39,179 bases of DNA from Chlorokybus atmophyticus (GCA_009103225.1 RHPI01000733.1:1-39179); one strand, 5' to 3'. Positions 3,397 to 38,986 are shown, numbered from the stretch's first letter. Program-made: numbers and translations. The notes: a model not told the origin generated them from the letters alone.

Positions 3397-3632
3397 CGTT
3401 GGTGGGTTGCTTTGTCAGAGATCCCAAGCGCTTGAACTGCATATGCACATCACATGCGGGTGAGGTTGCTGTAGACACGGCATCACAACAGCATCGCGCT
3501 GCAAGGGTGGTGGAGCACACAACTGCTCCGCACATGGGTGTGTATCATGCGTGCAGTCAACCTTAACCTAGGGTGCAGCTTTACATACCCACGCACACAC
3601 AAACCCTTACGCGCTCACGCAGCGCCACTGGN

Positions 3633-4037
<405 letters not shown>

Positions 4038-4560
4038 CTGACCTTTAGGAGCTTGCCCGCATCCAGCTTGCCACTAACCCTCGTCCGCCGCCGAACTCTC
4101 CGCCGCGAATGCCACGCGGCAACCTGTGCGCACGCCAGGAGAGAAGGTGTTGAAACGACTTCGTGCACGCAATGCGCAATTGGCAGCGCAGCGATGCCGA
4201 TGTAGTCTCGCGCTTTTGATATCTGTCTTTCTATCGCGGATCGCGGAGGCCGCGATGTGCTGTTTCTATGACGTGTAGCAAGCAGGACGCGTCAATCAAT
4301 GCATTGCCTTGATGGTCAGGCCTTTTCAGCGTCACGGCACGTGCCGAGGCCTGGCAGCGAATGGTGTAGGCATCGTCTTCGTCGCGGACTCCTGACGACT
4401 GCCGTCCACCTGGTCGTCGTCTGCGGCATTGCAGCGAGGGCGGTCGGCGGAGATCACCCTGCTGGCGGGTGCTTTGGAGAAGTGAAGGCAGGCGACCTGC
4501 GCAGCTTGGGTTGGAGCTTGCTGGGCTTGCTACTTTACGGTTGGCGGCTTTGCAGCCGTC

Positions 4561-5366: not shown

Positions 5367-5456
<90 letters not shown>

Positions 5457-5697
5457 GCGCGCGCACGTGCGCCCGTGTGTGAGAGCGTGAGGGGCCAGTT
5501 GTCAGCAGTTACAGATGCAAGCGCTTGTGTGTGTGGCCACCCTTAACCTCTCTGCCTTTGAGCAGGTGTTGTCCAAGCTCGTGGGCCTGCTGCAGAAGGG
5601 ATTGAAACGTTTGAAGGAACGAGTGACTGACCTGTGCCAATGGATCAGAACCAAAGTGCAGCAGCTGTTTGGCGTTGAGCCTGTTACAATACTTTAA
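4561..5697 (+). CDS. Small helical protein of unknown function, paralog 2 (exons 4561-4719, 5108-5278, 5566-5697; 153 aa)
   Basis: ATG at 4561; GT at 4720 and 5279; AG at 5106-07 and 5564-65; all junctions phase 0; stop TAA at 5695-97. Exons 1 and 2 are 159 and 171 nt, identical in length to paralog 3. Confidence 0.8.
5283..5452. repeat. (CT)n microsatellite at the start of intron 2 of paralog 2 (contains N gap 5320-5366)
   Basis: CT run begins a few nt after donor GT at 5279. Confidence 0.95.
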
Positions 5698-8306: not shown

Positions 8307-9826
8307 GACCACGGCGGCGCAGCCGCCGCTCTGCAGGACCACACACATGCACAGGCGCACCCATTGAGCATCGACGGCTTGTTGGAGAAGCAACAGCAAA
8401 GCATCTGCTGCGTGCTGCACGCATGCGCGCTCTCGTCAATGGGAAGCACGCTTGTACACACCCTACCTCTGGCCCAAGCGGGCGCCCTCAGCCTTGCTTG
8501 ACGACAACCCCGGCACCCCTTCGCCAACCCCTCGCCCACCCACTTCCGAAGCAGCGGTGCGGTCGTCTTGCCACGCGTCGGGCTGCTAGTCGTCGTGCCC
8601 GGCTTTCATGTTGGCCTTCTAGAGGCTGCAGCGCTGCTGGTGACTGAACCGACGCGTGCCCAACCCCTGCGAGACGCGGGTTGGTACAAAGGCCTGAACA
8701 GCTGATACGGCTGGTACTGAAGGCCTGCACGGCCCCAATGGCGCGGGCAGTTTGACGGGTTCACCAGTTAGGTTGCGTGCGCGCGGTCGGTTGCAGATAG
8801 CATACACATTATAGGCCTAAAACTTACACGATACCTTCCTTTGCAATAAGCATATACACAGTCGGTCGGGGTTCCTACTTATATATATGAACTTCGTGTT
8901 GTCTACGCATTGTCGTGGGACTGTAGCGATGGCGATGTCGACTGAGAGCGACTGTCTCTTTATGTCGATGCCTTTTTGCGTAGGCCGTCGCTGTGCGTCG
9001 ACGGTGACTCGTAGGCATGGCGGATATCGTCCGCGATCGTCGACATCGCTGCGTGGGTTATGTGACAACCATTTGGCAGAACGTTGTGTGATATTCTGAA
9101 GGTGTGCCGGTGCAATACGGTTGGTGTAGGCCCAGTCGTACGGTTTTCACACAGAGTGTAGCGGGAATGACCAGAATGGCCTGCTCTTTGCCGGCGGCTA
9201 AATGCCGACGAAACAACAGAGCAAAATCTAACTTGAGCGAAACAGTGCACCCACACGTCGACATCAACACACGCCGTTATCAGATAAAATGGTCTCCGCG
9301 TGTCCCCGTCGACGGACGAAGACAAGTCTGCCCTTGCCAACATCGACGCATCAAGACTTGTCATTCTTCGACGACGTAGACACATGCGCCATAACATAGA
9401 CTTTTTTGAGTCAATGGTTTGCCCATGGAAGCTGCTCGGGCGCACCTGCTGTACAGTTTGGCCTACTGTATTGACATGGCGTAAGTCACGTGCGCAGCGG
9501 TGAATATTGTGTTTTATGCTGCGTTTCTAGAGATGGCCATATGGGCTGCCAAGTTGTCATGCCTAGTGCCCGCGCGTAGCAGCCTTCATCGAGCAAGTTA
9601 CATCGAAACCATCGCCCGGCCTACCAGCATACCAGCGCGCGCACGTGACTGACCAGTAGTTGGGTCATGACTTCGGTAGTTGACGACCATAGCCTACATA
9701 GGCACCGCGCGTAGCTGTTCAGTTGTGAGTTCAGTTATAAGTTGTGTTCTATATCGAGTGGTGATTGCTGAAAATAGCCTCGATATGACCGCTAGCTTAT
9801 GTTCTGAACAGTCATGATTTAACTTG

Positions 9827-9832
9827 TATAAG
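9827..9832 (+). promoter_or_regulatory. Putative TATA box (TATAAG) in repeat A
   Basis: Present in both A1 and A2; lies 33 nt upstream of the sequence complementary to the putative self-priming site. Confidence 0.45.
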
Positions 9833-9984
9833 TAGTTACAGTGTTCATCGGATCAGCTAGTGACACTGTGAGTGAGAAAGCTAAGAGCTTGTGAAACGAC
9901 TTGAACTGCGAACACGTTATCCCGGTTACCAAGAAACCCCCTCACTGTGTGGGAGCCTGTGCATGCTCGTGTGTGCATCGTGCT

Positions 9985-10430
9985 TATCGAGATGCGTTGA
10001 CAAACCTACACATGCACATGTGTGCACGCCACCCAACACCAACGCCAAGAGGCTGCAACAACAAGACTAAGACCATCTATTGCCATCATGTCCGCGGGTT
10101 TTATACCCGTCAGGAATACACCTGTCTACTCTAGAAGCCACCACGTTTGCTACACTTATTTGAATGCTGCGTTCTAAAATACATCTTCTAGTTAACTCCA
10201 AGGGGCTATTTACTGAGTTTTAAACCGTCCAAATTGGTGCAATAACCACCGAGTTATGACAATTCTCGTGCAGGTCTGGAAGTTGCCAGACTCTGGACTC
10301 GAGTCCGGAACCTGTACGCGCCTGGAACTTTCGACTTTTGGACTCGAGTCCTCGCCTAGAGCCTTCTCGCGGCCATTCCTATTCAGAGGGCAAGCTGACC
10401 GTCCACCCGGTTATAGGTGTATCTTGAACA
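9985..10430. mobile_element. Nested 446-bp insertion in A1, probably a solo LTR of another family
   Basis: Absent from A2. Flanked by a 5-bp TSD GTGCT (9980-84 and 10431-35). Ends TATCGAGATGC...GTATCTTGAACA are a decayed TG..CA inverted terminus. Contains two GGACTCGAGTCC palindromes. Confidence 0.8.
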
Positions 10431-10599
10431 GTGCTTGTCATTGCTGTGAGCTTTATGTGCCTGGTTGCAGTGTGTTTGTTGGCATCAGCTAGGGCATAGT
10501 ATCCACGTGTTGCTTGCTCATTCCTTATTGAACAGTGTAATACATCATCCACTTATGCAAAGAACTGTGTATACAGCACTACCTATCGTAGTGCTATTT

Positions 10600-10613
10600 A
10601 CTCACAGCGTCAC
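10600..10613 (+). promoter_or_regulatory. Putative self-priming primer-binding site
   Basis: ACTCACAGCGTCAC lies 6 nt after the end of A1 and is complementary (13/14) to GTGACACTGTGAGT at 9860-9873. No TGG tRNA-type PBS directly follows A1. Confidence 0.6.
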
Positions 10614-11827
10614 CCTCTTTGCTCAAGTGAGTGCGTTGCATTCCGCATCAGATAGTACAGTCCGTATCTGGGGACACATCCATGTGCATTCGTTATCACT
10701 ATCATTACGTAGTGCACACACAAGCACTAGTGTGGTGAGTGGTAGCGGCATCAAGATAGGCAGTAGAGCACAAACACTCTACCCTGCATACACTTTCACC
10801 TATGGACTAGCTGTATCAGCAGGCCCACCCCGTTCTCTCCAATAGACGAGGGTGGCCTTAGCAGCAACAGCCCAATCTCTAATCTCACCTACGAGCGAAC
10901 TAGCGACGGGAGCAACAATCGTAGCAGCAGTGGCTCGTATTCTGTCTCCAACTTCACTCCGTTCCTGCCTACTCCTCGGCATTAAGCTTCCCCACTCTCG
11001 TCCGACAGTGACGACAACAAGGTGGAATCTTCCAGCTCAGCCACGTCCCTGCGCTTTTTCGGACGTGCTGGCACTACCTCGCTGGACGAATTTCATTCAT
11101 CATCAAGTTCCATTCCAAGATGCGACAGCAGGCTCTGAAGAATAAAGATTGGTCAGATGAGATGAGATCTCTTTTCACATTGCTGCTCGGTACCTGGACC
11201 ATGAAGCACATGATGGCTACAAGTCTGTTGCTGAACTGCATCGAGTTGATGGCTATGGCAAGCTCGCCAGTACCAAAGCATCTGCGTCATTGCACAGTCC
11301 AGCACCCGTCTTTCCACCTGCCACTCCCGCTGCAGTCACCGGGTTGTTCATAGCGGCCATTGACAGCACAGAGGAGGAAAGACCTGAGTTGGTGATCGTC
11401 AACCTGACCCCTGTAGAGATCGAGATCATGACGGCCGCGCGACGGGCCCGGATCCTTGATGCTGCCAATTTCGACAAACAACGAACTGCAGCCGTGGAGG
11501 TGGGCACACCCCTATCTTTGGCAACACCCGGCTCTCGCGCGGGAGGCAGTGCTTTCACCCTCGGGACAGTCGCACTCGCGCACCAGCCATCACTGTAGGT
11601 GCTGCCATCTCTGACTCTCCCCTTAAGGATCCATACGCTGCACTTTGTCGCACCTTCCCACTGCAGACCACTAGCAAAGTGGAGGAGTTAAGGCGGTTCC
11701 GAAGCAAGCCCAACGAGGACCCTCTACGCCTGTACTCAAAAATTGAAGGGCTGTTGAAGGACACTGACTAAATTGTCAGTGACGAGGCTGCTGCAGTAGT
11801 ATATGTCAATGAGTTGCATGCCACCCT

Positions 11828-11885
11828 GAGCGAGTCGACGCGTCTGACCCTGAACTGAGCTAGTCGACGCGTCTGACCCTGAACT
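11828..11885. repeat. 29-bp tandem duplication inside gag
   Basis: GAGC(G/T)AGTCGACGCGTCTGACCCTGAACT twice; not a multiple of 3, so it shifts the frame. Confidence 0.9.
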
Positions 11886-12258
11886 ACAGCAGGCCCTTAG
11901 CTACACGCTCAAGGAAGCTTTTGAGACTGCACAAGCCATTTATAAGCGCTTGGTGTATGAGAAGGCCGTGCTAAACACCAACCGCAGCGCCTCACAACCT
12001 GTAGCCAGCACAGCTGTTGAGCCTCCTCACCGCGAATGTGGCCGGGACGCTCCACCAGCACGCGACAAAGGGAAACGGTCAGCGCATACGGCTTTGCCTT
12101 CCCCTGTGCTGTGTCATCTCTGTGGACGGCATGGGCACTATCAAAAAGAGTGCACCGAAGAGTACGCAACTCTGATCTGCGACTACTGTCACAAGACAGG
12201 CCACTTAGAGTTAGTCTGCTGGCTCAAGTTCCCTGAGTTGAGACCCGTCAACAGCTAC

Positions 12259-12402
12259 GACGGCAACAACTCTGGTGGCTATAACAGCAACAACACTGGG
12301 AGCCACAACGGCAACAACTCTGGTAGCTACAACAGCAACAACATTAGACGCCACAACGGCAACAACTCTGGTGGCTACAACAGCAATCACACCGGAGGCC
12401 AT
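12259..12402 (+). repeat. Three 48-bp coding repeats (NGNNSGGYNSNNTGSH-like)
   Basis: Units start at 12259, 12307 and 12355, immediately after the zinc knuckles. Confidence 0.9.
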
Positions 12403-14835
12403 AACAACACCAATTATGCCAATGCTCGCAAGGAAGAGCAAGGCTACAGGGGGAAGAATCGCCCTCCTCAGCGTAAGGGACTGCATGGACGTCCGCGCTG
12501 CTGCTGTTGCCGCCAACCCGCCAGCTGATGACCATATGGCTGCCCTCATAGCGCGTATGGCACGCTTGCAGGAAGACAAAGAGCAGGACTACCGCGCCTG
12601 CTACTCTACCCGTTGGGCATGGATGGCTCCAAAGCGCACGGGAGACACCAGCACTCCGTCACTTATTCAACCATCCCAACGGGTTCAAGGGGAAGCCGCA
12701 ACATTGTCAGCAGCTACCTCATTAAAAGCCATCGGTGGTGCTGCACCAGCAGCAATAGTTACACCGGCTACGATGTCAACTCCGTCAATGTCAGCAGGAA
12801 CTACTCCAGTTGCACCAGAAGTTGGTAAAATAGCGAGCACTATAACGCCAACACTAGTGAGCACGCTGATGACAGCCACTGTTGTCACCAACCCTGCAGC
12901 AGTAGGTCGCACTGGTCCCGCTCCGACTGCAGGACCACCGGTGTCAGCGAGCGTTGAGACCACTCTCGCGCCACTGAGCGGCACTCTCGCCACCACCGGC
13001 AGTGTCATCGTTGAGCCCGTTGCCACTGCAGCGACGCGCGCAGCTACATTGCCCGCTCTTGACATCACTCAAGCTGTCGCACGAGGTCACCAAGCTGAGC
13101 GCGCATGGGAAACCATCATGGGTGGAGCAGATCCCACTACCATTGCTTTTGAGCGTGGAGGAGAGCGCACCACTCGCGTTGACCGCATTGATCGCGTCTT
13201 CCCACTGCCTGAATATTACACTCTGCAAGAACAGACTCAGCGGCAAGTGAAGGATGAAATCCTCGCCGACACGGCGCCTCCCATGCGAGATCGTGTCTTT
13301 GAGGTCAGAACACCTGTGCTGGAGTTGGCACTACAGCTGTTCTAGACTCTGCATAACGACATGCAGACTGCGCCATGCCAGCCCGCACCAGTCCGTCATG
13401 AACCCTTTTAGCCAAGCCCGCTGGACACGTATTGGGACCGGCAACCCAACATACAGCAGCACATCGCTGATACAGCCGACATGCCTCTGGGTGACGACGA
13501 AGCACTGAGACCCTTCAGTACCGTTCGGCTTCATAAGCGCTACACCGCTCTTGAACAGGGGTTCACCTGGCGATGGGACCAAGCGGCAGCAATCAATGCA
13601 AGAGCGCAAGCCCTTGTCAATGCTCGCGCTGGCGTTCTTCAACCCACGGTCGCTGGCCCATCATCCAGCACAACACCTCTCGTCGGTGAGCCCGACATTG
13701 ACGCGGCGCGGGCGCTGGCCTAACAAACAAAGGGGGGGATCGCCCCGTTGCTACCCGCCTCGTTGGAAGACTTGCCAGACAATCAGCGGGATTCACAGAG
13801 AGGCTACCTCACACCACAAGGGTGTACACAACGAGATGGAGCAGGCTCAATCGGAGAACAGCAATTGCGCACTGCCCTGTTACGACAAGCAACCATGCTA
13901 CATCGACAAGAAGGCATCGGCCTGAGACGGATGTTGGGAATGCGAGAAGGTGGCAATGCAACTCAAGCAAGACTAGTGACTTAGCTAGTCACCACTCACC
14001 CCGCAGTCCCTCTGTGCGCATTCGGCACCATATTGTTATGGTAGGACGCCTTCGTTCGCTACGGCAAGCCTATGACGAGGTTGCCTCGGCAGCCACGAAC
14101 ACCTTAGAAGAAACTAAAGAGGCCATACTGCACTTGCCAGGGGTGGAAGCAGTGCGGCAGCGCAAACGCATCGTAGCTGCTTATGAGCAGCATGTCCAAC
14201 AGCCAGAGATTTACCCCACTGTGCGGGCACGAGCAACAACGGTGCTGGAAGTGGGGGTGGTCAATGGCAGATGGGATGCTTACATGGCAGGGATCTTAAG
14301 GGTTCCCACCATCACCCACGGCATAAGAGCGTGGCTCTTGCGCGCAGTGTATCTCCAGCCCATGCCTCAAAATCACCGCTGGAGTGACATGGTCAACAAT
14401 CCAACAGCCACATGGGAAGGTACACGGGTCAGGGAGGCAGCTCATGCTGTACGCTGGATTAATGGGGAAGAACAGGCTGCACGGGAGGCGGGCCCACAAA
14501 CACCCGGTCCTCCAGGGTTTCCTCAACAGCCACTGGCTACGCCGCCAGGTATAACCCCGGCCACACAAAGGCGCAATCCCCGTGCAACACAACCAGGGCA
14601 ACCACAGGCAGCATCGCAAGCACCTAGGCCGTTGCGCGTATACCAACAGCCAAGACAAGGACGGTTCGGGCCAGGCCGCGGGCAAGGAGGTCTCCAAGAC
14701 CCAGCTGGTCGAGGGGCGCTTGCCGCACTGCGCTCGACACCACCGGAGGAGATTGCAGCAGCAGTCACCGCACGCACACGTTATCGACGAGTCAAGCGGC
14801 TGCGCATCCACGCCAACGCACCCATGATCGCCAAC

Positions 14836-15190
14836 CAATGCAAGCATGTCACTATCGATGGACGAGCACCCAAGCGTGTGATGCTGGACTTTGGAGCCCA
14901 GCCTGTCATTATCGGTCGTTACCTCGCGCGCGACCTTGGCACCACTAGCGCTGAGCTGATGCCATGCTCATACATGCTCGACACAGCAACCGGCAGCCGT
15001 GACAAGGTGATTGGCATCACCAAGCAAGCCCTCTGCATACGTTTGACAGGAGTGGACCCTTCCCACAGCACCGCGGTCATACAAAAGTGTGTAGTTACCG
15101 ACGCAGGATCCTTCGACCTGCTGCTGGGACAGGACTTCAACTTCCCTGTTGGCATGGGGCTGGACTGCTGGACAGAGAAGGCATGGTTTT
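14836..15190 (+). pseudogene. Retroviral-type aspartic protease domain
   Basis: VMLDFGAQ (catalytic Asp at 14887-89) and the downstream FDLLLGQDF motif, within ORF 13822-15477. Confidence 0.85.
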
Positions 15191-15599
15191 GTCCTCATTG
15201 GGAGGAGGATGGAGAGGATCAAGGTTATCTGCCTCCCGAACTGGTAGCTTGCACCCGCTCTCACCCAAGGACAGCTGCAATAACCACCTACAAGTCGTTG
15301 TCGATAACCACTAATAGGTCAGCAATAGCCACCCACAGGTCGGTTTCAACAACCATTGACAGATCAGCTGCGGTGGTCACTCACAACTCTGACCCAGACT
15401 CTCCTATCCCATATGACAAATGTCCGGAAGATGCCATTGAAAAAGTGGCCCACCAGAAATCAGCGCAACGCCGCTGACGCGCACAGGTGGTCGCACATCT
15501 ACGATTAACCAGACCGCGGCTCACTTCACGGTTCCCTCTCTACAAGGACCAAGCTGCAGTCCAAGAGCAACACTAGGTGGCCACTGGAGTGGTGGAGTT

Positions 15600-16530
15600 T
15601 CACATATTCCGTCGACAACAAGGCGTCACCGTGTTGGAATTGTTTAAAGGTATGGGTAGTGGCCTCGCCGCGGACCTCAACACCGGCGCGACGGTCACCA
15701 AGTACTTCTACTATAACCCAGTTTTACACGCACAGCTTGCCCTGAGCCACCACCTGCGCCACCTACACAAATGCTACCCGCAGCGACTGCCGCTATCGGC
15801 ACTGCAAGGCAGTCTGAAGGCACTGCGGATCACCTCCTGGCGGTGGGCAACATTGATCTGCTCATAGCAAGATGGGAGTGTCAAGGACACTCCAGAGCAG
15901 GCAGAGGCCAAAGGCTCGCTAATTCTCGCAAGCGACTGTCCCGGGAACTAATGCGTATCATTAATATCCTGCAGAGCAACCATCTGTCCAGGCCTCAAAG
16001 ATACATCATCGAGAATGTGCACTCCGAGGACGATCAGCACCATCACGTGGCCAACAGCTTTCGATAAGTTTGTTCTTTACTGGGACACCCTCTCAAAATC
16101 AATGCAGCGCGTCATGGCTCATCGCGTCCGCGCCAAGTGGACCAACCTGGCTACAATCGAGGATCTCTTTGCTGCTAAACATCTGCACAGCAGTTGTCCA
16201 CGCCATCTCACCGTCGACGCTATTTTGGACCCTGGGCGCATAGCACAACAAGTCACACGACACGATCACCAGCACTTTTACCAGTGCAACCAGCCTGGTC
16301 AACCACGTCGTGCGCTCCCCACTCTGGTGTCTAACCCAGGATCATACGCCTTCCGCAACCAAGGAGAAGGCATGGTGTTGGATTCCAACACAAGCCGACT
16401 GTAGAGACCCCGCGCGATGGGACTCTCTCCAAGCGTTATTGTAGGTTCCACGCTGACCAACAGTCAGCAATGTCAGCTGTTGCGACGCGCCATGGACCAG
16501 AACAGCATGGTCTGGTTATTGAAAGTGTGC
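15600..16530 (+). pseudogene. DNMT3-like C5 cytosine methyltransferase domain within pol
   Basis: Motif I TVLELFKGMG (15628-15657); motif IV IDLLIARWECQGHSRAG (Cys at 15879-81); motif VI YIIENV (ENV at 16011-19); motif VIII AHRVRAKWTN (16117-16146); motifs IX/X RAMGL...LLRRAMD (to about 16500). Motifs are in canonical order with two frameshifts. Confidence 0.88.
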
Positions 16531-16829
16531 TTTGCTCTCCACGACCGCGATGTGTTATTTCAAGAGCTCGAACACCTGGCGGGGGGGTGGGCCGATCGCG
16601 TGCAAGATTTCAAAGTGGCACACATCGCCCTCGAAATTGCTCATATGGAGGAGCAGGCAACAGTCATTATGAAGGATCTCAGTAGTCGCCAACGCTACCT
16701 CGTGGTCCCATGCCATTTGACCACTGGCCACAGGCCAAACGCGAGTACAGTTTGAGGCTTTTCTCAACAAGTGGAGGAGTCAATTGGACTTCAGCGTGAA
16801 GGAACTGGGCATTTGCTCAGCTTACCAGA

Positions 16830-17740
16830 TGGACATCGAGTTGGTGGACACCGAATTGATGTTTCAATGACAGTACGAACTCTCCAAGTTGGAAGAGGAC
16901 TTGGTGGAGCAGAGGTGCAAGGCTCTGCTAGATGCCGGTCTGATTAAGGAGTTCACAGCGGACTTTGCGGCCGCGACTGTCATGCCCCTGAAGAAGGATT
17001 CAACAGGCAATTGGACAGACCGACGCATGTACGGCGACTATCCCCCCCCTGAACAACAAAACCAAACAAGACAGGTATCCAATGCCTACTGCAGAGGGTA
17101 TCCTTGATGTAGGAGACTATACTGTCTTCAACATCCTGGGAATGCGACAAGGTTACAACCAGATCGCCATCAGGGAGGAGGACAAGCACAAAACCTCTTT
17201 CTGGGGCAACCGCCAGCTGTACCAGTGGAAGGTCATGCCCTTCGGACTGAAGAACGCTCCTGCCAAGTTCTAGCGCGTCATAAACAAAGCCTCGAAGGGG
17301 CTGGACTTCACGTGGTGCTACATTGACGACATTCTCATCTTCGATCGCAACAACAAAGAGCACCTACATCACATCGAGGAGGTGCTGAAGAGGCTCACAC
17401 GGATGGGGATGACGGTGCACCCCGACAAGTGCACTTTCTTCACTCGCAAGGTACCCTACCTAGGGCACATGATTGTGCCCCACAGTGTGTACGTACAGCA
17501 GGCAAAGGTGGAGGCTTTGGAAGCTATCCCTGCTCCAACGGACCTAACGCGCCTGCGCGCCTTTCTGGGCCTGGCCAACTACTATCGCCGGTTCGTGAAG
17601 GACTTTGCAAAGATCGCGCTCAACGAGCTTCTGAAGAAGGAAGTGGAGTTTGCGTGGAAGGAGCCACAACAGCAGGCGTTTGAGGAGCTAAAAGGCAGGC
17701 TCACCACCGCTCCCATCCAGCAACGCCCTGACTACAACAA
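16830..17740 (+). pseudogene. pol: Reverse transcriptase (Ty3/Gypsy type) plus connection region
   Basis: RMYGDY, RYPMP, GYNQI, YQWKVMPFGLKNAP, YIDDILIF (YIDD at 17319-30), KCTF, YLGH, LRAFLGLANYYRRFVKDF. Confidence 0.97.
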
Positions 17741-18100
17741 ACCCTTCATCCTCCACACCAACTGAAGCAAGCTTGGGATGGGGGCTGTGCTGGTGCAGCA
17801 CGATGAGAACAAGCACGACGGGTGTCGTACGCCAGCCAAAGCAACAACAGCGCTGAAGCCAAGTACAGCAGCTACGAGGGGGAGTGCCTCGCTGCAGTGT
17901 GGGCCATCTCCTTCTTCTGACCTTTCCTATTTAGTCGGCAATTCCAACTGATCACCGATCACCAGCCACTCAAGTGGTTGATGACCAACCAACATCCGAC
18001 AGGGAAACTTGCTCGCTGGGCCCTGTTATTGCAGGAGTATGACTCTAAGATCGACCACCGCATCGGACTCACCAACCAAGACGCCGATGGCCTCAGTTGC
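17741..18100 (+). pseudogene. RNase H (Ty3/Gypsy type)
   Basis: FILHTN*S..GMGAVLVQ, YAS, YSSYEGECLAAVWAI, FQLITDHQPLKWL, KLARWALLLQEYD, NQDADGLS. Confidence 0.95.
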
Positions 18101-18539
18101 AACTCTCACCCCAGTATCAACGATGCAACCGGAGCTCGGCACGAGCTCGGCCCTGCAGCAGCAGCCCCCACCTTGGCGGCCATGTTTGCGGTTGCTGCGT
18201 TACGTTCTGGGCGCCAGATCAGCACCACTGCCACCTCAACGGCAGATAAAATTCCTGCCCTTGAGTCCACTGGCCCCACAATAACCGCACCTATGGAGAA
18301 CGCCCACGCGGACGACATTAAAGTCGACGATACAGAGCTGGCACCCACCGACACCAGGCAGGATATATGGCTAAATAAGCCATCACTCTCCTTCCTTCAA
18401 AGTGACCAACTTCCCTCCAACATGAGTGCACGAGAGTAAGATCGTGTCAGTCAACGCACCCGCCACTATTAATGGGCGGATGACAAGCTTTATCGCCGCG
18501 TCCATGACAAAGGAGGTGCCAACACCAGCCACCCGCGAG

Positions 18540-19569
18540 GGTATCATCACTGCCCTCCACACTAAGCTTGGACACTTCGGTGACAAGCGTACAGTGAGCC
18601 TGGTAAGGGCGCAATATTAGTGGTATGGGCTATCCAAACAGGTGCAGGGGTTTGTCAGTCGCTGCCAATAGTGTGACATGGTACGCGCCAGCCTCAACAC
18701 ACGCAGCGCCACCTTGCACCCTCTCCCCATCTCCGGCCTTTTCTATCACTAGGGACTCTTAAGAGACTTTGCAACCTCGGCATGTGGCAACCGTTACATC
18801 CTGGACAGAATCGAGCATTTCGCCTGATGGTGGGAGCTAATGCCATTACCCGACAAAAGCAGCAGAGGTTGTCTCAGGCCTTCCTCTCCCATGTCCTCAG
18901 CCGGTTCGGCAGCTGCGCTAAGGTCATCACCGACCAGGGCACTGAGTTCAGAGGGGACTTCGACACCCTGATGGACAGATGCTACATTGATCATCGCCGC
19001 GCTTCGCGTTACCACCCCAAGCCGACGGTCTCGCCGAGCGGATAGTACAGACCATCAAGAAGGCACTCCGCAAGTACGTGCTGGAGTATGAGAAGAACAC
19101 CTGGGGCGACCACCTTCCGTGGGTGGCTTTTGGATACCTATTGTCAAAGCAGGCGGCTCTTCGCGAGTACAGCCCATACTACCTGCTGTTCAGACGTCCG
19201 CCATTGCTTCCCTTTCGTGCACAGCAGGAAGTAGACCGTGTGGTGAACAACCTCGACGATCCCGACTGGATGCACCACGACATTACCACCCGAGCCGCGC
19301 TGTTTAAACACACCGTCCCAATGGCCTTCAACATAATACGTATCGCACAGCACGGCGACACCCTGCGCTACGAGCGCGTGCGGAGCGGCTTCAACAACGA
19401 GCGCCAACGGCGGTTTCAAGCAAGGGACTTTGCCTACCGCATGGCAGCCACCAAGAACACGCTCGACACCTCTATGGGCCGCACCGTCTACAAGGTACTC
19501 AAGGTGTACCCCACAGGAGTACTGGACCTCCTCTGTCAAAATGGCAAGAGGTTGAAAGACAACATGTAA
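18540..19569 (+). pseudogene. DDE integrase with HHCC zinc-binding domain and C-terminal extension
   Basis: LHTKLGHFG...RCQ*CD; ITDQGTEFRG; YHP..DGLAERIVQTIKKALRK; WGDHLPWVAFGY; YSPYYLLF; RFQARDFAY...VYPTGVL. Confidence 0.95.
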
Positions 19570-19647
19570 AACTGCGCGCCATGTCAACTTCCGTGCATAG
19601 CTGGCTTTGCGCGCATGCAGCACCGTCACCCCGCCCGCAGCACACGC

Positions 19648-19779
19648 TGTAAACGCTGCGGCAGCGCCGGCGACAACGCACTCATGATGCTCTGCAATGA
19701 CTGTATCAAAGGCCTGCATTGCTATCGTCTGGAGCCCCCGTTGGACGCAATACCCATGGAGAACTGATGCGACGATTGC
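19648..19779 (+). pseudogene. PHD finger in frame with the integrase C-terminus
   Basis: CKRCGSAGDNALMMLCNDCIKGLHCYRLEPPLDAIPMEN*CDDC fits C4HC3 spacing, with one ligand Cys appearing as Arg and the conserved Trp as TGA at 19765-67. Confidence 0.85.
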
Positions 19780-19845
19780 CGCACCAATGGCCCTCCTCAC
19801 CTGCGTTAGCAACTGAGCTCTGGAGCTGGAACCTCCCCAGAAACT

Positions 19846-19856
19846 GAAGGGGGTGG
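19846..19856 (+). promoter_or_regulatory. Putative polypurine tract
   Basis: GAAGGGGGTGG lies 2 nt before TGTTGAC (19859) at the start of repeat B1. Confidence 0.55.
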
Positions 19857-20092
19857 CTTGTTGACTATGTGTCCTACACCATAGCATGTACACTAAGGAG
19901 AACACCGCCTCCACATGTACGTGTGATTCAGCGACAGCGGAGTAGCTTCGCCAAGCACTCCGCGCCATACGAGCTGGATTATCTTTTACTTTTGCTACAT
20001 GTTACAACATGTTGCAGCAACAGGGCTAGCAAGCATGTCTTTCCCAGCAGCGGCCCGAGACAGTGTGACCCTCGACTCGCCTCGACCCGACA
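19853..20092 (+). repeat. Terminal repeat B1 (240 bp)
   Basis: Colinear with 20674-20915, about 90% identical by eye; ends in CCCGACA. No B copy at the left end of the element. Confidence 0.93.
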
Positions 20093-20094
20093 GC

Positions 20095-20676
20095 TGTCAT
20101 GCCTAGTGCCCGCGCATACCAGCCTTCATCGAGCATGCCTACATTGCAACCATCACCCGGCCTACCAGCATACCAGCGCGCGCGCGTCACTGATTAGTAG
20201 CTAGGTCATGACTCCAGAGTAGCTCACGACCATAGCCTACATATGCACTGCGCGTAGCTGTGAATTCGGTTATAAGTTGTGTTCTATATCGAGTGGTGAT
20301 TGCTGCGGAATTAGCCTCGATATGACCATTTGCTTATGTTCTGAACAGTCATGATTTGACTTGTATAAGTAGTCACAGTGTTCATCGGATCAGCTGGTGA
20401 CACTGTGAGTGAGAAAGCTAAGAGCTTGTGAAACGACTTGAACGGCGAACACGTCATCCCGGTTACTAAGAACCCCCTCACTGTGTGAGAGCCTGCGCAT
20501 GCTCGTGTGCATCGTGCTTGTCATCGCTGTGAGCTTGGTGTGCCTGGTTGCAGTGTGTTTGTTGGCATCAGCCAGGGCATAGTCCACGTGTTGCTTGCTC
20601 ATACACCTCACGTAACAGTGTAACACATTTTCCGCTCATGCAAAGAACTGTGTAAACAGCACTACCTATAGTAGTG
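20095..20676 (+). repeat. Terminal repeat A2
   Basis: Copy of A1 without the nested insertion; starts TGTCATG 2 nt after B1. Confidence 0.93.
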
Positions 20677-20915
20677 GCTTGCTGACTGTGTGTCCTATAG
20701 CACAGCATGTACCTTAAGGAGAACACCGCCTCACCATGTTCGTGTGTCATTTAGCGACAGCGAAGCAGCTCCACCAAGCACTCCGCGCCATACGAGCTGG
20801 GTTATCTTTTACTTTTGCTACATGTTACAACATGTTGCAGCAACAGGGCTAGCAAGCATGTCTTTTCCTGCAGCGGCCCGAGACAGTGTGACCCTTGACT
20901 CTTCTCGACCCGACA
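20674..20915 (+). repeat. Terminal repeat B2
   Basis: Copy of B1 forming the right end of the element (…CCCGACA). Confidence 0.93.
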
Positions 20916-20989
20916 AATGTCGTAATAGTGCATGCCTCTGCGCAATCAGATATGGACACTACAGCGACACGAAAGACAACTAGGCAACT

Positions 20990-32010: not shown

Positions 32011-35000
32011 ATGATGATGATAGCGGCGCCGGCAGCCTGGCTGCCTCTGATGCTGCCGCCGATATTGTTGTTGCTGCTCGGCTCAGGTAAGAGAGAGCGC
32101 TCTGCTGCTTGCCGCCCACAGCTCAACATCCAGAATCTAATTATCAATGACAGAGCCGCACAACAAGTTTTCGGCACACATGCCAATCAAAAACCCTGTC
32201 CATGGGCACGGGCGGAGTTGAGCGTTGTCTTTTTGTTTGCTTTCTGTGCATTGCGTAAGGCTGGGTGTTGTTTACCACGTGTGTTGCTGGCCTGAGGCTC
32301 AGGTGGTGTGTGCGGTTGACTGCCGGCAGCCAGTAAAACCGCATGCATATCTCCTGCGTTGCATTGCGCTGTGCTTAGGCTCTGGCTCCGGAGACGCTAA
32401 CTTGTTTGTATCCGTGTGCAGCCCGCGAGGCGTCTGCTATAACCAATCAGGAATGTAAGTCGATTGCAAACTGTGTTACATGCATGTAGTGTGCTACAGT
32501 GTAGCGGCTTATGTGCAACAGCCTTTGCATGGACACGGGGCAATGCAATGTCATTGAACTCACGCTTGCACTGGCTTGCAGTCTCTGGTCTCAAGTCACT
32601 GCAGGCGGCCATATACTACATTGATGGCAACGGCAACAAAGTGCCAGGGATCCCAAACTGGCCTGACTTGACCGCACAGCCCAGCTCTTTTGACCCCTGC
32701 ACCGTGGGCCTGGCCGGGATCGGATGTGACAACAGCGCCATCACTGTAGTGTGAGCTGATTTGTGTGCTCGGTGCTGAAACTTCCACCTGCCTGTGGCAA
32801 AAGCTCAGTTCCTTGACGCATGTTTTTGCAGGGACTTTACCGCACAGGGACTTTACAACGACCAGCCCTTGGACGGTCTCAACGACCTCCACAGTCTTCA
32901 ATACATGTAAGTGCGCAACACACATACATAAAGCTGTTTTGTGCAAACGTAGTTGAGTAAGTGGCGTCTGGAACAGCCTCATGCAGATGTGCGTCACTTA
33001 CCTGCAATAACAACCATGGTTGATGCGCAGATACCTATCTCAGAATCACTTCACCGGACCGTTGCCCGCGCTTAGCGCATACAACGCATTGTATATAATG
33101 TAAGTTTGGTAATTCTCAGCACGCCCCTATTGATTGCCTCTTTGATCGCTTGGTTGTCAAGTCGATCATGCATAGTTGGCATGCAAGAAATATCTGTGTG
33201 CAGACATGCTTCCGACAATAGCTTTTCTGGAGAGGTGCCGTCAGAGTGGAGCAACTTGATCGAGCTACGGGAACTGTAAGACTATGCTTGATTCATCACA
33301 TATGTATGCATCGACTTGGTCATTTCACATGTACATGCAGCTCCAAATCCAAGGTGACGCACGCACATACTATGCATGTACACATGTTGGTGTGCATGGC
33401 ATGAAAATCTTGAAGGTTGCTTGAGGGCACTCAGCTTAACCTGTCTGTTGTAATTTGCTGTGCAGCATACCATTGCATGTCACATGCACAGTGCACTTAT
33501 ACATTTCTGCCACATGTGTTGTTGATTAACATGCATACATGCATGCACAGGTCGCTTGGGCGCAATCAGCTTACCGGATCGTTGCCGAGCACATGGAAGA
33601 CTCTGGACAACCTTCTATATTTGTGAGTTGTGACTACATTGTAGCGTGCAGCATACCATTGCATCTGCACTTGTACACTCCCGCCACAAGCCGCCTGTGT
33701 TGTTGGCTGACATGCTTGTACAGGTATCTTGACAACAATCAACTTTCCGGGGAGTTGCCGAGCACGTTTGGCGGTTTTAACAACTTTATAAGTCTCCAAA
33801 GGCTGTGAGTTGTAACACATAGTGCATGCCGCAACACCCAATTTCTTATTGCGTATGATATTGTGCTTTTGTATGCGTTCAATCACCACGTTTCTTAACC
33901 TGGCGCATGATGTGCAGCTGGGTACAGAATAATGTTGGGCTATGTGGGAACATCCCGTTCACAACGTTCACCGACTTTGAATACGAGAACACTGGCCTTG
34001 GAAGTCCCTGCCCATCAACTCTGTCCCCAAGTCCTCCCCCTCCCCCTCCTCCTCCNNNNNNNNNNNNNNNNNNNNNNNNNNNNNNNNNNNNNNNNNNNNN
34101 NNNNNNNNNNNNNNNNNNNNNNNNNNNNNNNNNNNNNNNNNNNNNNNNNNNNNNNNNNNNNNNNNNNNNNNNNNNNNNNNNNNNNNNNNNNNNNNNNNNN
34201 NNNNNNNNNNNNNNNNNNNNNNNNNNNNNNNNNNNNNNNNNNNNNNNNNNNNNNNNNNNNNNNNNNNNNNNNNNNNNNNNNNNNNNNNNNNNNNNNNNNN
34301 NNNNNNNNNNNNNNNNNNNNNNNNNNNNNNNNNNNNNNNNNNNNNNNNNNNNNNNNNNNNNNNNNNNNNNNNNNNNNNNNNNNNNNNNNNNNNNNNNNNN
34401 NNNNNNNNNNNNNNNNNNNNNNNNNNNNNNNNNNNNNNNNNNNNNNNNNNNNNNNNNNNNNNNNNNNNNNNNNNNNNNNNNNNNNNNNNNNNNNNNNNNN
34501 NNNNNNNNNNNNNNNNNNNNNNNNNNNNNNNNNNNNNNNNNNNNNNNNNNNNNNNNNNNNNNNNNNNNNNNNNNNNNNNNNNNNNNNNNNNNNNNNNNNN
34601 NNNNNAACAATGAGGCTGGAACCTCCTCCTCCCCCTCCCCCTCCTCCTCCTCCTCCCCCTACTTCTCCTCCTCCTTCTCCTTCTCCTTCTCCTTCTCCTT
34701 CTCCTTCCTCGCCACCCCCGTTGGCCCATCGGGAGTGCAACAGGCAGCCAGCCACAGGGAGGTGGAAGCGCGAGGGAGAGGGTTCTGCTCTCACCCTCAT
34801 AAAACGCATCACCCATTGCCCGTGCGTCGCCAACAAGAGAGACTGCTGCTCCGAGTGCAAGCGTACAGATTGCTGCCTGTTCTGGTCGTTCAACAAGAGC
34901 AAGCAAGCCTGTGAGCTGTATGCTTCGACCACAAAGCCCTCTGTCTGCCTACCGTATGATGGCAACCTTCACGTGCACGCGGGTTCCAAGTGGGTGTCAG

Positions 35001-37611: not shown

Positions 37612-38986
37612 GTGGGGACGGTGTTCTCTTATGCTTCTGCATTTGGCATCGGCGCCAATGACGTGGTAAGTTGAGCTCACTGTGCACAATTCTGCCCTCG
37701 CTGCATGCTGTCAACTGCCTTCCTGGAATGCGGCATGCAGAGATGCGTGTTGTGTACCCAGATGCATGCGCACAAACGCACACGCACATGTATACATACT
37801 GTCTCTCACCCTCACAGGCGAACGCCTTCGCGTCATAAGTGGGTTCCAAGGCCCTGACTATGCCGCAAAGTGTTGTCATTGCGTGAGTGTGCAGACTCAC
37901 GGGTGCAATCCTACTCGGATCCTCAGTCACAGACACAATCAGGGGACATACTGTATCTGTTTACTGACCTATCCTACTTATCTACTCACTCAGTCACTCA
38001 TGCATGCAGGTCAAAGATTGCCAAGCCCTCTGCCTTTGCTTCCACCCCCCAACTCCTCATGTACGGCATGTTGTGTGTCCTCATCGCTGCTGCCTTTGGG
38101 ACAACCTCGCTTGCCACTTGGGCTTCCCTGTGTCCACCACCCACACTACAGTTGGTGGTGAACAGGGTGTTGTGGGTATGACCCTCTCTATACGCGGGAA
38201 GAGCGCCGTCGTGTGGTCCGAATCATCCACCACAATCCCTTATTTTGCTGGCATGAGCGCCATATATGCCTCGTGGGGCACATCACCAGTATTATCTGGT
38301 GCCTTCGTGGTCATTTTGTTCAATCTTCTTCGCACCTTTGTGCTGACATCAAACAACTCATTCAAGAGGGCTTATTGGGTGCTTCCTGTCCTGGTCGGAC
38401 TCACCTTATTTATAGTGACCTTCTTCATCTTCCAGACTGGCAACAAGAACAAGACCTGGAACACGCCAGTATTTAATGGCACTGCGCTTTGGCAAAGCGG
38501 TGTGGACTTTCTGTTATTGTGGCTGCGGGCACCGCAGCCATTACGCTGGTGGTGATTATGCCATAACTCGCACGCAGCCTCATACGCGAAGACACGAAAG
38601 AGAAGCAGTGTGTGTGTGTGTGTGTGTTCCCCCACTGTCATCATCCCATTGCAGGTACCTTAGAGACCTCGCTGATCGACGCATGGAGGAAGCAGAACAG
38701 GCTGCAGTCAAGGCTAACACCAACACCAACACCAACACCAACACCAACACCAACACCGACCTCACAGAATCCAACACCCACATCCACACCAACAACAACA
38801 CAAAGTCCAACCCCAAGTCCATGGCCGAGATGTCTCGTACTGTCGCTGGTCAGTCTCAGCTCGACGTGGACATCGCCAACTACGGCGGCGGTTTCCACTT
38901 CCCGCTCGAGAAGCGCGTTGGGAAGGTGCTCACAAGTCTGTCGGAGAGCTGCGTGTGCAACAACCGCGTCGCACGAACAGTTCAGG
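37612..38986 (+). pseudogene. PiT/PHO4-family phosphate transporter pseudogene (PTB-like, partial)
   Basis: AFGIGANDV|ANAFAS*VGSKALT, TGAILLGSSVTDTIR, PVSTTHTTVG, SWGTSPVLSG. In-frame TAA at 37836-38 and TGA at 37884-86; frameshifts near 38128 and 38510; a long hydrophilic loop exon follows from about 38657. Confidence 0.88.
38715..38757 (+). repeat. (CCAACA)n hexamer repeat encoding poly-NT in the transporter loop
   Basis: About 7 copies of AACACC. Confidence 0.9.

Follow-up and report, generated by a model that had tools for sequence, protein, structure and literature searches.

How does a retroelement that carries a DDE integrase come to have its repeats arranged as in elements that integrate by a tyrosine recombinase? 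The question is raised by a Ty3/gypsy element at positions 9555-20915 of a 39,179-nucleotide stretch of DNA from Chlorokybus atmophyticus (GCA_009103225.1, RHPI01000733.1:1-39179), here called the window, by which we mean the whole of that stretch. The textbook link assigns split direct repeats to the tyrosine recombinase, as in the DIRS-order elements, TOC1 among them, and two full long terminal repeats (LTRs) to the DDE integrase, a link that is broken by the clade described here. An earlier note on this DNA had described an A-internal-B-A-B layout with exact TGTC and GACA ends, and had proposed that such a layout results when a circle containing two LTRs is cut inside the LTR and then integrated. 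The window element, a degraded copy of some age, belongs to the algal Ty3/gypsy elements and carries a DNA methyltransferase alongside an ordinary DDE integrase, and the comparison with its relatives favours, with a probability that we put at roughly 0.6, a route made up of conventional reverse transcription, closure of the circle, an integrase cut at an internal palindrome and integration of the permuted molecule.

Repeat finding and blastn confirmed to the base both the repeat order, which stands in place of two full LTRs, and the two ends of the element. Repeats, priming sites and coding domains all read on the plus strand of the window. The left repeat A1 (9555-10593) begins with TGTC and comprises the 3' part of U3, with a TATA box, as well as R and most of U5; its similarity to A2 (20095-20674, with the right limit at 20674/6) falls into two blocks, 9555-9985 and 10431-10593, which are separated by approximately 445 extra bases. 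B1 (19854-20092), the 5' part of U3, ends in GACA, and B2 (20675-20915) starts with the same base as B1 does after the polypurine tract (PPT) and places GACA at the right end of the element. No additional copies of A or B were detected by blastn within the window. The termini of the element, TGTC on the left (9555-9558) and GACA on the right (20912-20915), are the two halves of a perfect 10-bp palindrome, GACAGCTGTC, located at the B1/A2 joint (20089-20098, GACA-GC-TGTC), which we regard as the putative attachment (att) site of the integrase. Identity between A1 and A2 was 88.6% over 439 columns and 87.9% over 165 columns, and that between B1 and B2 was 90.5% over 242 columns, so that the two pairs have diverged about equally, as the earlier note had held. 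A divergence of ∼10-12% between the repeats points to an old copy, which also carries later insertions and deletions, and its flanks, AAGT on the left (9551-9554, a candidate target-site duplication) and AATG on the right (20916-20919), match at two of four bases, or at all four if one base has been inserted.

The interior of the element (10594-19853) corresponds to a gag-pol region with many frameshifts and stops, in which the domains follow one another on a single strand as CCHC zinc knuckles, protease, methyltransferase, reverse transcriptase, RNase H, integrase and PHD finger. A gag fragment with CCHC zinc knuckles (11854-12525) lies upstream of pol, and is followed by an aspartic protease (14848-15138; PF13650, E = 1.3e-6), a frameshifted C5 cytosine DNA methyltransferase of Dnmt3 type (15577-16536; PF00145, with blastx matches to DNMT regions in relatives), reverse transcriptase and RNase H, which are split among several frames (16730-18100), an integrase with an HHCC zinc domain, a DDE core and a C-terminal region, also frameshifted (18426-19566), and finally a C-terminal PHD finger (19570-19764; PF00628), a domain also found in relatives. 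Since gag stands upstream and the order is protease, reverse transcriptase, RNase H and integrase, the element belongs with Ty3/gypsy; the position of the Dnmt3-type methyltransferase, between protease and reverse transcriptase, together with the PHD finger places it in the published Gypsy-Dnmt3 group; the earlier note had mentioned neither domain. The best protein matches of the element are polyproteins with a DNMT domain, a PHD finger or both, and the methyltransferase of the closest relative, P0161, matches DNMT3A/B/C best among PDB entries. Five 24-bp tandem repeats (12254-12418), included in the gag fragment directly after the zinc knuckles, encode a repeated peptide rich in Asn, Gly and Ser.

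The integrase deserves separate attention, as the repeats alone would suggest a different enzyme. In the window its zinc domain is recognised by PF17921 (E = 2.7e-4), and the match to PF00665 is weak because the gene is broken; nevertheless, the second D and the E motifs remain readable (ITDQGTEF and ADGLAER). Unlike in this broken gene, the integrase domain is strong in the relatives, and an alignment of the P0161 integrase with those of Ty3 and prototype foamy virus (PFV) indicates that D, D and E are all kept. A search for a tyrosine recombinase (PF00589) gave no match in the scanned pieces of the window (most plus-strand pieces and one minus-strand open reading frame, ORF) or in the intact relatives. 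Domain scans hence bear out the earlier description of a Gypsy element with a DDE integrase. An element of the DIRS order, similar to PAT or Ngaro, with a tyrosine recombinase that was overlooked or is supplied in trans, would account for the split direct repeats, which are the hallmark of that group (PMC8969392, PMC8557442). Indeed, DIRS-order elements such as PAT, Ngaro and SymbioDIRS-Dnmt3 share with the window element the order A1-internal-B1-A2-B2, and in them too the internal B1/A2 joint is the joint of circularised ends. However, reviews tie these repeats to tyrosine-recombinase elements without duplications, and no target-site duplication is made by that enzyme (PMC8969392), whereas the window element has a DDE integrase, TG...CA inverted-repeat termini and relatives flanked by 4-bp duplications. 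Given also the conserved zinc domain of the integrase, the Ty3/gypsy order of reverse transcriptase, RNase H and integrase, and the missing PF00589 match, we assign hardly any weight to this explanation.

The earlier note had contrasted the layout with DDE-integrase elements, said to have two full LTRs, and had suspected an undescribed mode of replication. The first statement is not quite true, since the split layout has been published for KnitGypsy-Dnmt3 of Klebsormidium nitens, an element with a Dnmt3-type methyltransferase in a Gypsy pol (de Mendoza et al. 2018, Nat Commun 9:1341, PMC5890265). The legend of Fig. 4c of that paper records DIRS-type repeats (A-coding-B-A-B) along with Gypsy domains, and because of this one legend the layout is not wholly new; the window element belongs to a known, barely characterised kind. 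The second statement holds in part, as neither termini, duplications, att site, type of primer-binding site (PBS) nor mechanism is given there for KnitGypsy-Dnmt3. The likeness between both elements, which extends to the methyltransferase within pol and the DIRS-like layout, was established from the published description, and no Klebsormidium proteins appeared among the matches from our searches for relatives of the window element. As far as the searched literature shows, the att palindrome, the duplications, the self-priming site and the circle-like joint described below had remained undescribed.

Further evidence on how these elements integrate came from related copies. Using integrase fragments, we reached a family, here termed family J, on eukaryotic contigs of the JGI samples 3300060284 and 3300060285; its integrase fragments share ∼45-50% amino-acid identity with that of the window. 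One copy, L007, shows the complete order A-internal-PPT-B-A-B, with 96.6% identity between its A repeats and 98.3% between its B repeats. Three others (L011, L006 and L015) display internal-PPT-B-A-B, the left end being lost or beyond the contig, while L010 (1723-11696) has the shorter form A-internal-B with both flanks visible. In L013 (9362-9482) and L014 (10589-10709) a single B follows the PPT without A2-B2, and the left end is outside the view. Beyond the window copy, both informative A1 starts (L007 and L010) begin with TGTC, and seven of the eight right ends stop at GACA, the exception being L011, in which the end of B2 is degenerate (CACGA/tatg). L010 is flanked by a perfect 4-bp target-site duplication (AAGC/AAGC, with a chance expectation of 1 in 256), and L007 by a duplication matching at three of four positions (TGTA/TGCA). 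The comparison that the earlier note had recommended therefore gave TGTC and GACA ends with a 4-bp duplication in relatives of the A-internal-B-A-B or A-internal-B form, although not the alternative A-B-A-internal-B form that it had also anticipated. Copies with a single B, such as L010, could derive from B1/B2 recombination, from integration of a 1-LTR circle or from a circle that was cut twice.

The arrangement extends well beyond family J. In L005, a member of a third family whose left end lies beyond its contig, a PPT is followed by a B1 of 99 bp, the sequence CACGACA-GC-TGTCAGG, an A2 of 1.9 kb and a B2 that ends in GACA beside the flank. The metagenome contigs L001, L002 and L003 are collapsed or tandem assemblies and uninformative on ends. 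Still, the exact 10-mer GACAGCTGTC occurs between PPT and gag in five families, those of the window, family J, L005, L002 and L003 (in the latter two it is placed between the pol stop and gag), when its chance occurrence within 1-2.5 kb would be ∼0.002 per family. Within family J it is exact in L006, L011 and L015, with one mismatch in L007. All five families have in common the order pol, G-rich PPT, B (99-240 nt), CGACA-GC-TGTCA, A and gag, and in all relatives B1 is directly preceded by the G-rich tract. The palindrome was absent from the Gypsy-Dnmt3 locus of Closterium (L004:8820-24712), which belongs to a subclade without the PHD finger; the repeats of this locus are complex, and a gene on the opposite strand is nested within it. 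To judge from these sequences, the split layout is a heritable, clade-wide feature and no accident.

That conclusion bears on the alternative that a canonical element was rearranged once, or misassembled, to give the window copy, with its 5' LTR truncated at the palindrome and an extra LTR fragment after the 3' LTR. Taken alone, a single copy in the window, as old as its repeat divergence of ∼10-12% implies and marked by later indels, could be read in this manner. Nevertheless, its A and B pairs are equally diverged, layout, palindrome and termini recur in independent insertions across contigs and families, and the same layout is published for K. nitens (PMC5890265). Furthermore, canonical LTRs with B upstream of A1, the observation that according to the earlier note would have made this copy an oddity, were looked for and found in no copy examined. 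We hence consider a one-off origin extremely unlikely.

Whether the repeats were permuted during integration can only be judged once the LTR laid down by reverse transcription is known, and its limits are set by the two priming sites. A polypurine tract, AGAAACTGAAGGGGG (19839-19853), adjoins B1, as the earlier note had indicated. The PBS that it had placed after A1 is likewise present, although of another kind: a tRNA-type site was considered and rejected, as no TGG follows A1. Instead, a predicted PBS, ACTCACAGCGTCAC (10600-10613), which starts 7 nt past the end of the A1/A2 similarity, is complementary at 13 of 14 positions to a segment within A1, GTGACACTGTGAGT (9860-9873), the putative 5' end of the transcript and self-primer. 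This segment begins ∼28 nt past the end of a TATAAG box (9827-9832). The window shares a primer/PBS duplex of 13-14 bp, homologous in position, with L007, L015 and L010: in L007 between 1347-1360 and 1556-1569 (13 of 14, plus one G·U), in L015 between 527-540 and 738-751 (14 of 14), and in L010 between 2274-2286 and 2481-2493 (12 of 13). Compensatory changes were observed between L007 and L015 (T-A to C-G, and C-G to T-A) and in the core of L010 (G-C to A-T), and in the window the entire outer half of the duplex differs while the pairing is still maintained. Perfect duplexes of 15 bp appear at the same relative place in L003 and L002, that of L003 starting ∼20-25 nt after a TATAAA sequence. 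In Tf1/sushi and Tcn1, self-priming elements of the Ty3/gypsy group, the PBS pairs not with a tRNA but with the beginning of the transcript of the element itself (PMC6317226). Given a start site predicted from the TATA spacing, the arrangement found here would correspond to Tf1-type self-priming; the window element would resemble Tf1/sushi and Tcn1 in its PBS type, and differs from their two full LTRs with att at the LTR ends.

Because the PBS lies just after A and the PPT would prime at the first base of B, the LTR as defined by reverse transcription is B+A, in which U3 consists of B and the first 305 nt of A. This assignment, on which the earlier note was right, is strongly supported, and it locates the palindrome inside U3. 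The opposite assignment, A+B (TGTC...GACA), with an internal region that recombination or a nested insertion placed inside two tandem LTRs, has the appeal of canonical TG...CA ends with a 4-bp inverted repeat and of a B1/A2 joint that resembles an LTR-LTR junction. It appears very unlikely, as the PPT always adjoins B1 and the self-priming PBS always follows A1, the internal region lacks LTRs of its own, and the arrangement is inherited across families. The ends made by reverse transcription carry no conserved TG...CA: B starts with TGGCTTG in the window and with AATGAG in family J, and U5 ends with CTATTT and GTGAAG, respectively. The sole conserved sequence of integrase type is the palindrome inside U3.

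As U5 ends just before the PBS and U3 starts just after the PPT, the A2/B2 boundary corresponds to an end-to-end joint between U5 and U3. We measured this joint in each copy against the end of U5 predicted from the self-priming PBS. It was exact in L011, and in L006 it contained 4 additional nt, at the point where the PBS begins. In the window ∼6-8 nt are missing, with TG/GTG microhomology; the last six bases of the predicted U5, CTATTT (10594-10599), are found after A1 and missing from A2. A loss of 133 nt with GA microhomology was seen in L007, and one of ∼430 nt in L015, where the predicted start site is lost, so that this copy was probably dead on arrival. The first base of B2, in turn, is always the base following the PPT, and the B1/A2 palindrome is the same in every copy save for the single point change in L007. 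A variable U5/U3 joint beside an invariant internal site is what would be expected if linear cDNA were closed into 2-LTR circles by end-joining. A short hairpin (CACTAC, a 5-nt loop and GTAGTG) is present at 10577-10593 and at 20660-20676, where the A1/A2 similarity ends and just 5' of the A2/B2 joint.

The same joints could be approached from template switching by reverse transcriptase, which would generate linear cDNA longer than one unit, or concatemeric, to be cut by integrase at two palindromes with no ligated circle. A B2 start fixed at the base after the PPT, next to an A2 end that varies and often shows 2-3 nt of microhomology, is in keeping with reverse transcriptase jumping from a template end, and L003:1-18357 (ctg159469_5x_c) consists of 2.2 head-to-tail units, 8262 bp long and perfectly repeated, each with internal region, PPT, B, palindrome, A and PBS. 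Such an array may be genuine (a tandem or concatemer), may reflect an extrachromosomal circle that was read around or may be an assembly artefact, which reduces its value as support. The exact joint of L011 and the four additional bases of L006 at the start of the PBS are as expected from ligated full-length ends, and we could devise no specific switch that would yield A-internal-B-A-B rather than A-B-A-internal-B. Template switching as the general route is, in our opinion, unlikely, though it is the competitor to be taken most seriously.

In the circle route that we favour, transcription would begin in A, approximately 30 nt past the TATA box, and the transcript's own 5' end would prime the minus strand at the PBS just after A, as in Tf1, with plus-strand synthesis starting from the G-rich PPT at B's first base. 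The resulting linear cDNA would be joined end to end, creating the U5/U3 joint now visible as A2/B2. The DDE integrase would then cut after both CAs of CGACA-GC-TGTCA in the 5' LTR copy, leaving 3'-OH CA ends with 2-nt GC overhangs, whose spacer would be lost on repair, and the opened molecule would be inserted with a 4-bp staggered cut as A-internal-B-A-B. In this product A1 would retain promoter, R and U5, and B1-A2 would provide U3 and R at the 3' end of the RNA, so that the cycle could repeat. A cut at the other copy of the palindrome would yield A-B-A-internal-B, and cleavage of both palindromes, or of a 1-LTR circle, would give rise to A-internal-B and to a solo A-B. The parts of this scheme are not equally secure. 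Termini, duplications and layout strongly support that the ends used for integration are the two halves of the conserved palindrome inside U3, that 4-bp duplications are made and that the element, once integrated, is circularly permuted relative to the 2-LTR form. Relatives' layout, termini and joints thus fit the cut-circle proposal of the earlier note; the ligated circle itself, the cleavage of the palindrome by integrase and the start and end of transcription are steps that we infer.

Several considerations weigh against this route. Bases missing at the junctions were in every case lost from A and never from B, an asymmetry not demanded by simple end-joining; it could be due to a recessed plus strand, or else to template switching. 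The junction variants could also have been inherited by subfamilies rather than remade at each insertion. Left ends were available for three copies only, none of the copies in this small sample has the alternative form A-B-A-internal-B that the model predicts, and the flanks of the window copy itself make no clean duplication (AAGT against AATG). All the evidence comes from fossil copies, with neither circular DNA nor a new insertion observed, and both the start of transcription and the polyadenylation site are predictions. Finally, no further copies of the window's own family were retrieved. A protein search with the window integrase fragment returned four matches only, all with ≤53% identity, and the nearest proteins to the element are only 35-53% identical; at the DNA level, no exact match was obtained for a 20-mer of B among JGI metagenomes or for a 21-mer of A among viral contigs, and protein-guided scans for this family found one short locus in metagenome contigs and none in viral contigs.

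Retroviral integrases offer a precedent for the cleavage step. They cut palindromic LTR-LTR junctions (PMC1180852, PMC1905944, PMC4372172), and in the 2-LTR circles of PFV and HIV-1 the cut through a palindrome composed of two att halves can restore a substrate for integration, much as the model would have it. In retroviruses, however, the palindrome coincides with the U5/U3 joint, and the route is a minor or debated one; in the clade of the window element, by contrast, the palindrome is found at 99-240 bp within U3, and integration would have to pass this way. With respect to Ty3/gypsy elements in general, TG...CA termini and a duplication within the 4-6 bp range were found across the window element and its relatives, allowing for the degenerate right end of L011 and the unclear duplication of the window copy; in contrast to the two complete, identical LTRs of that group, the window element and L007 have A only on the left and B-A-B on the right. 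It is tempting to extend the model to a whole clade of LTR elements with a DDE integrase in green and streptophyte algae, in which the att sites would have moved to a palindrome internal to U3 and the opening of a closed 2-LTR circle by integrase would have become obligatory, a generalisation that we hold tentatively and at slightly less than even odds.

If the model is true, these elements would constitute a natural system with the 2-LTR circle as a required substrate of integration and not a dead end, making obligatory a circle-precursor route that was long dismissed and explaining split direct repeats without a tyrosine recombinase. An integrase that recognises an internal palindrome would also bear on the choice of DNA ends and on the origin of DIRS-like layouts. 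This replication mode can be tested directly in culturable algae by way of the 10-bp site and of the primer and joint predicted here. On a practical level, since the clade breaks the link between repeat layout and enzyme, automated annotators will misfile such copies.

Some additional features of the window copy and its surroundings merit description. The block of ∼445 bp within A1 (9986-10430), absent from A2, is a later insertion, bordered on both sides by GTGCTT (9980-9985 and 10431-10436), and is possibly a small non-autonomous element; no second copy was found in the window. The right flank, AATGTCG, resembles the start of A, a likeness that we took as chance because it is seen in no other copy. 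Outside the element, a long (AG)n microsatellite extends over 3587-4040, with a single N recorded before it at ∼3631, and 1.6 kb downstream a (CT)n tract (5367-5488) forms with it a long inverted repeat. Between 28475 and 35075 the window contains an inverted-repeat structure of ∼6.6 kb, whose outer arms are 89-90% and inner segments 73-77% complementary and which includes a very AT-rich stretch (34001-35000, GC content 27%); it may be a foldback element or a transposon with long terminal inverted repeats. An exon-like ORF at 38004-38552, matching the PHO4 phosphate transporter family, is the sole host gene recognised in the window.

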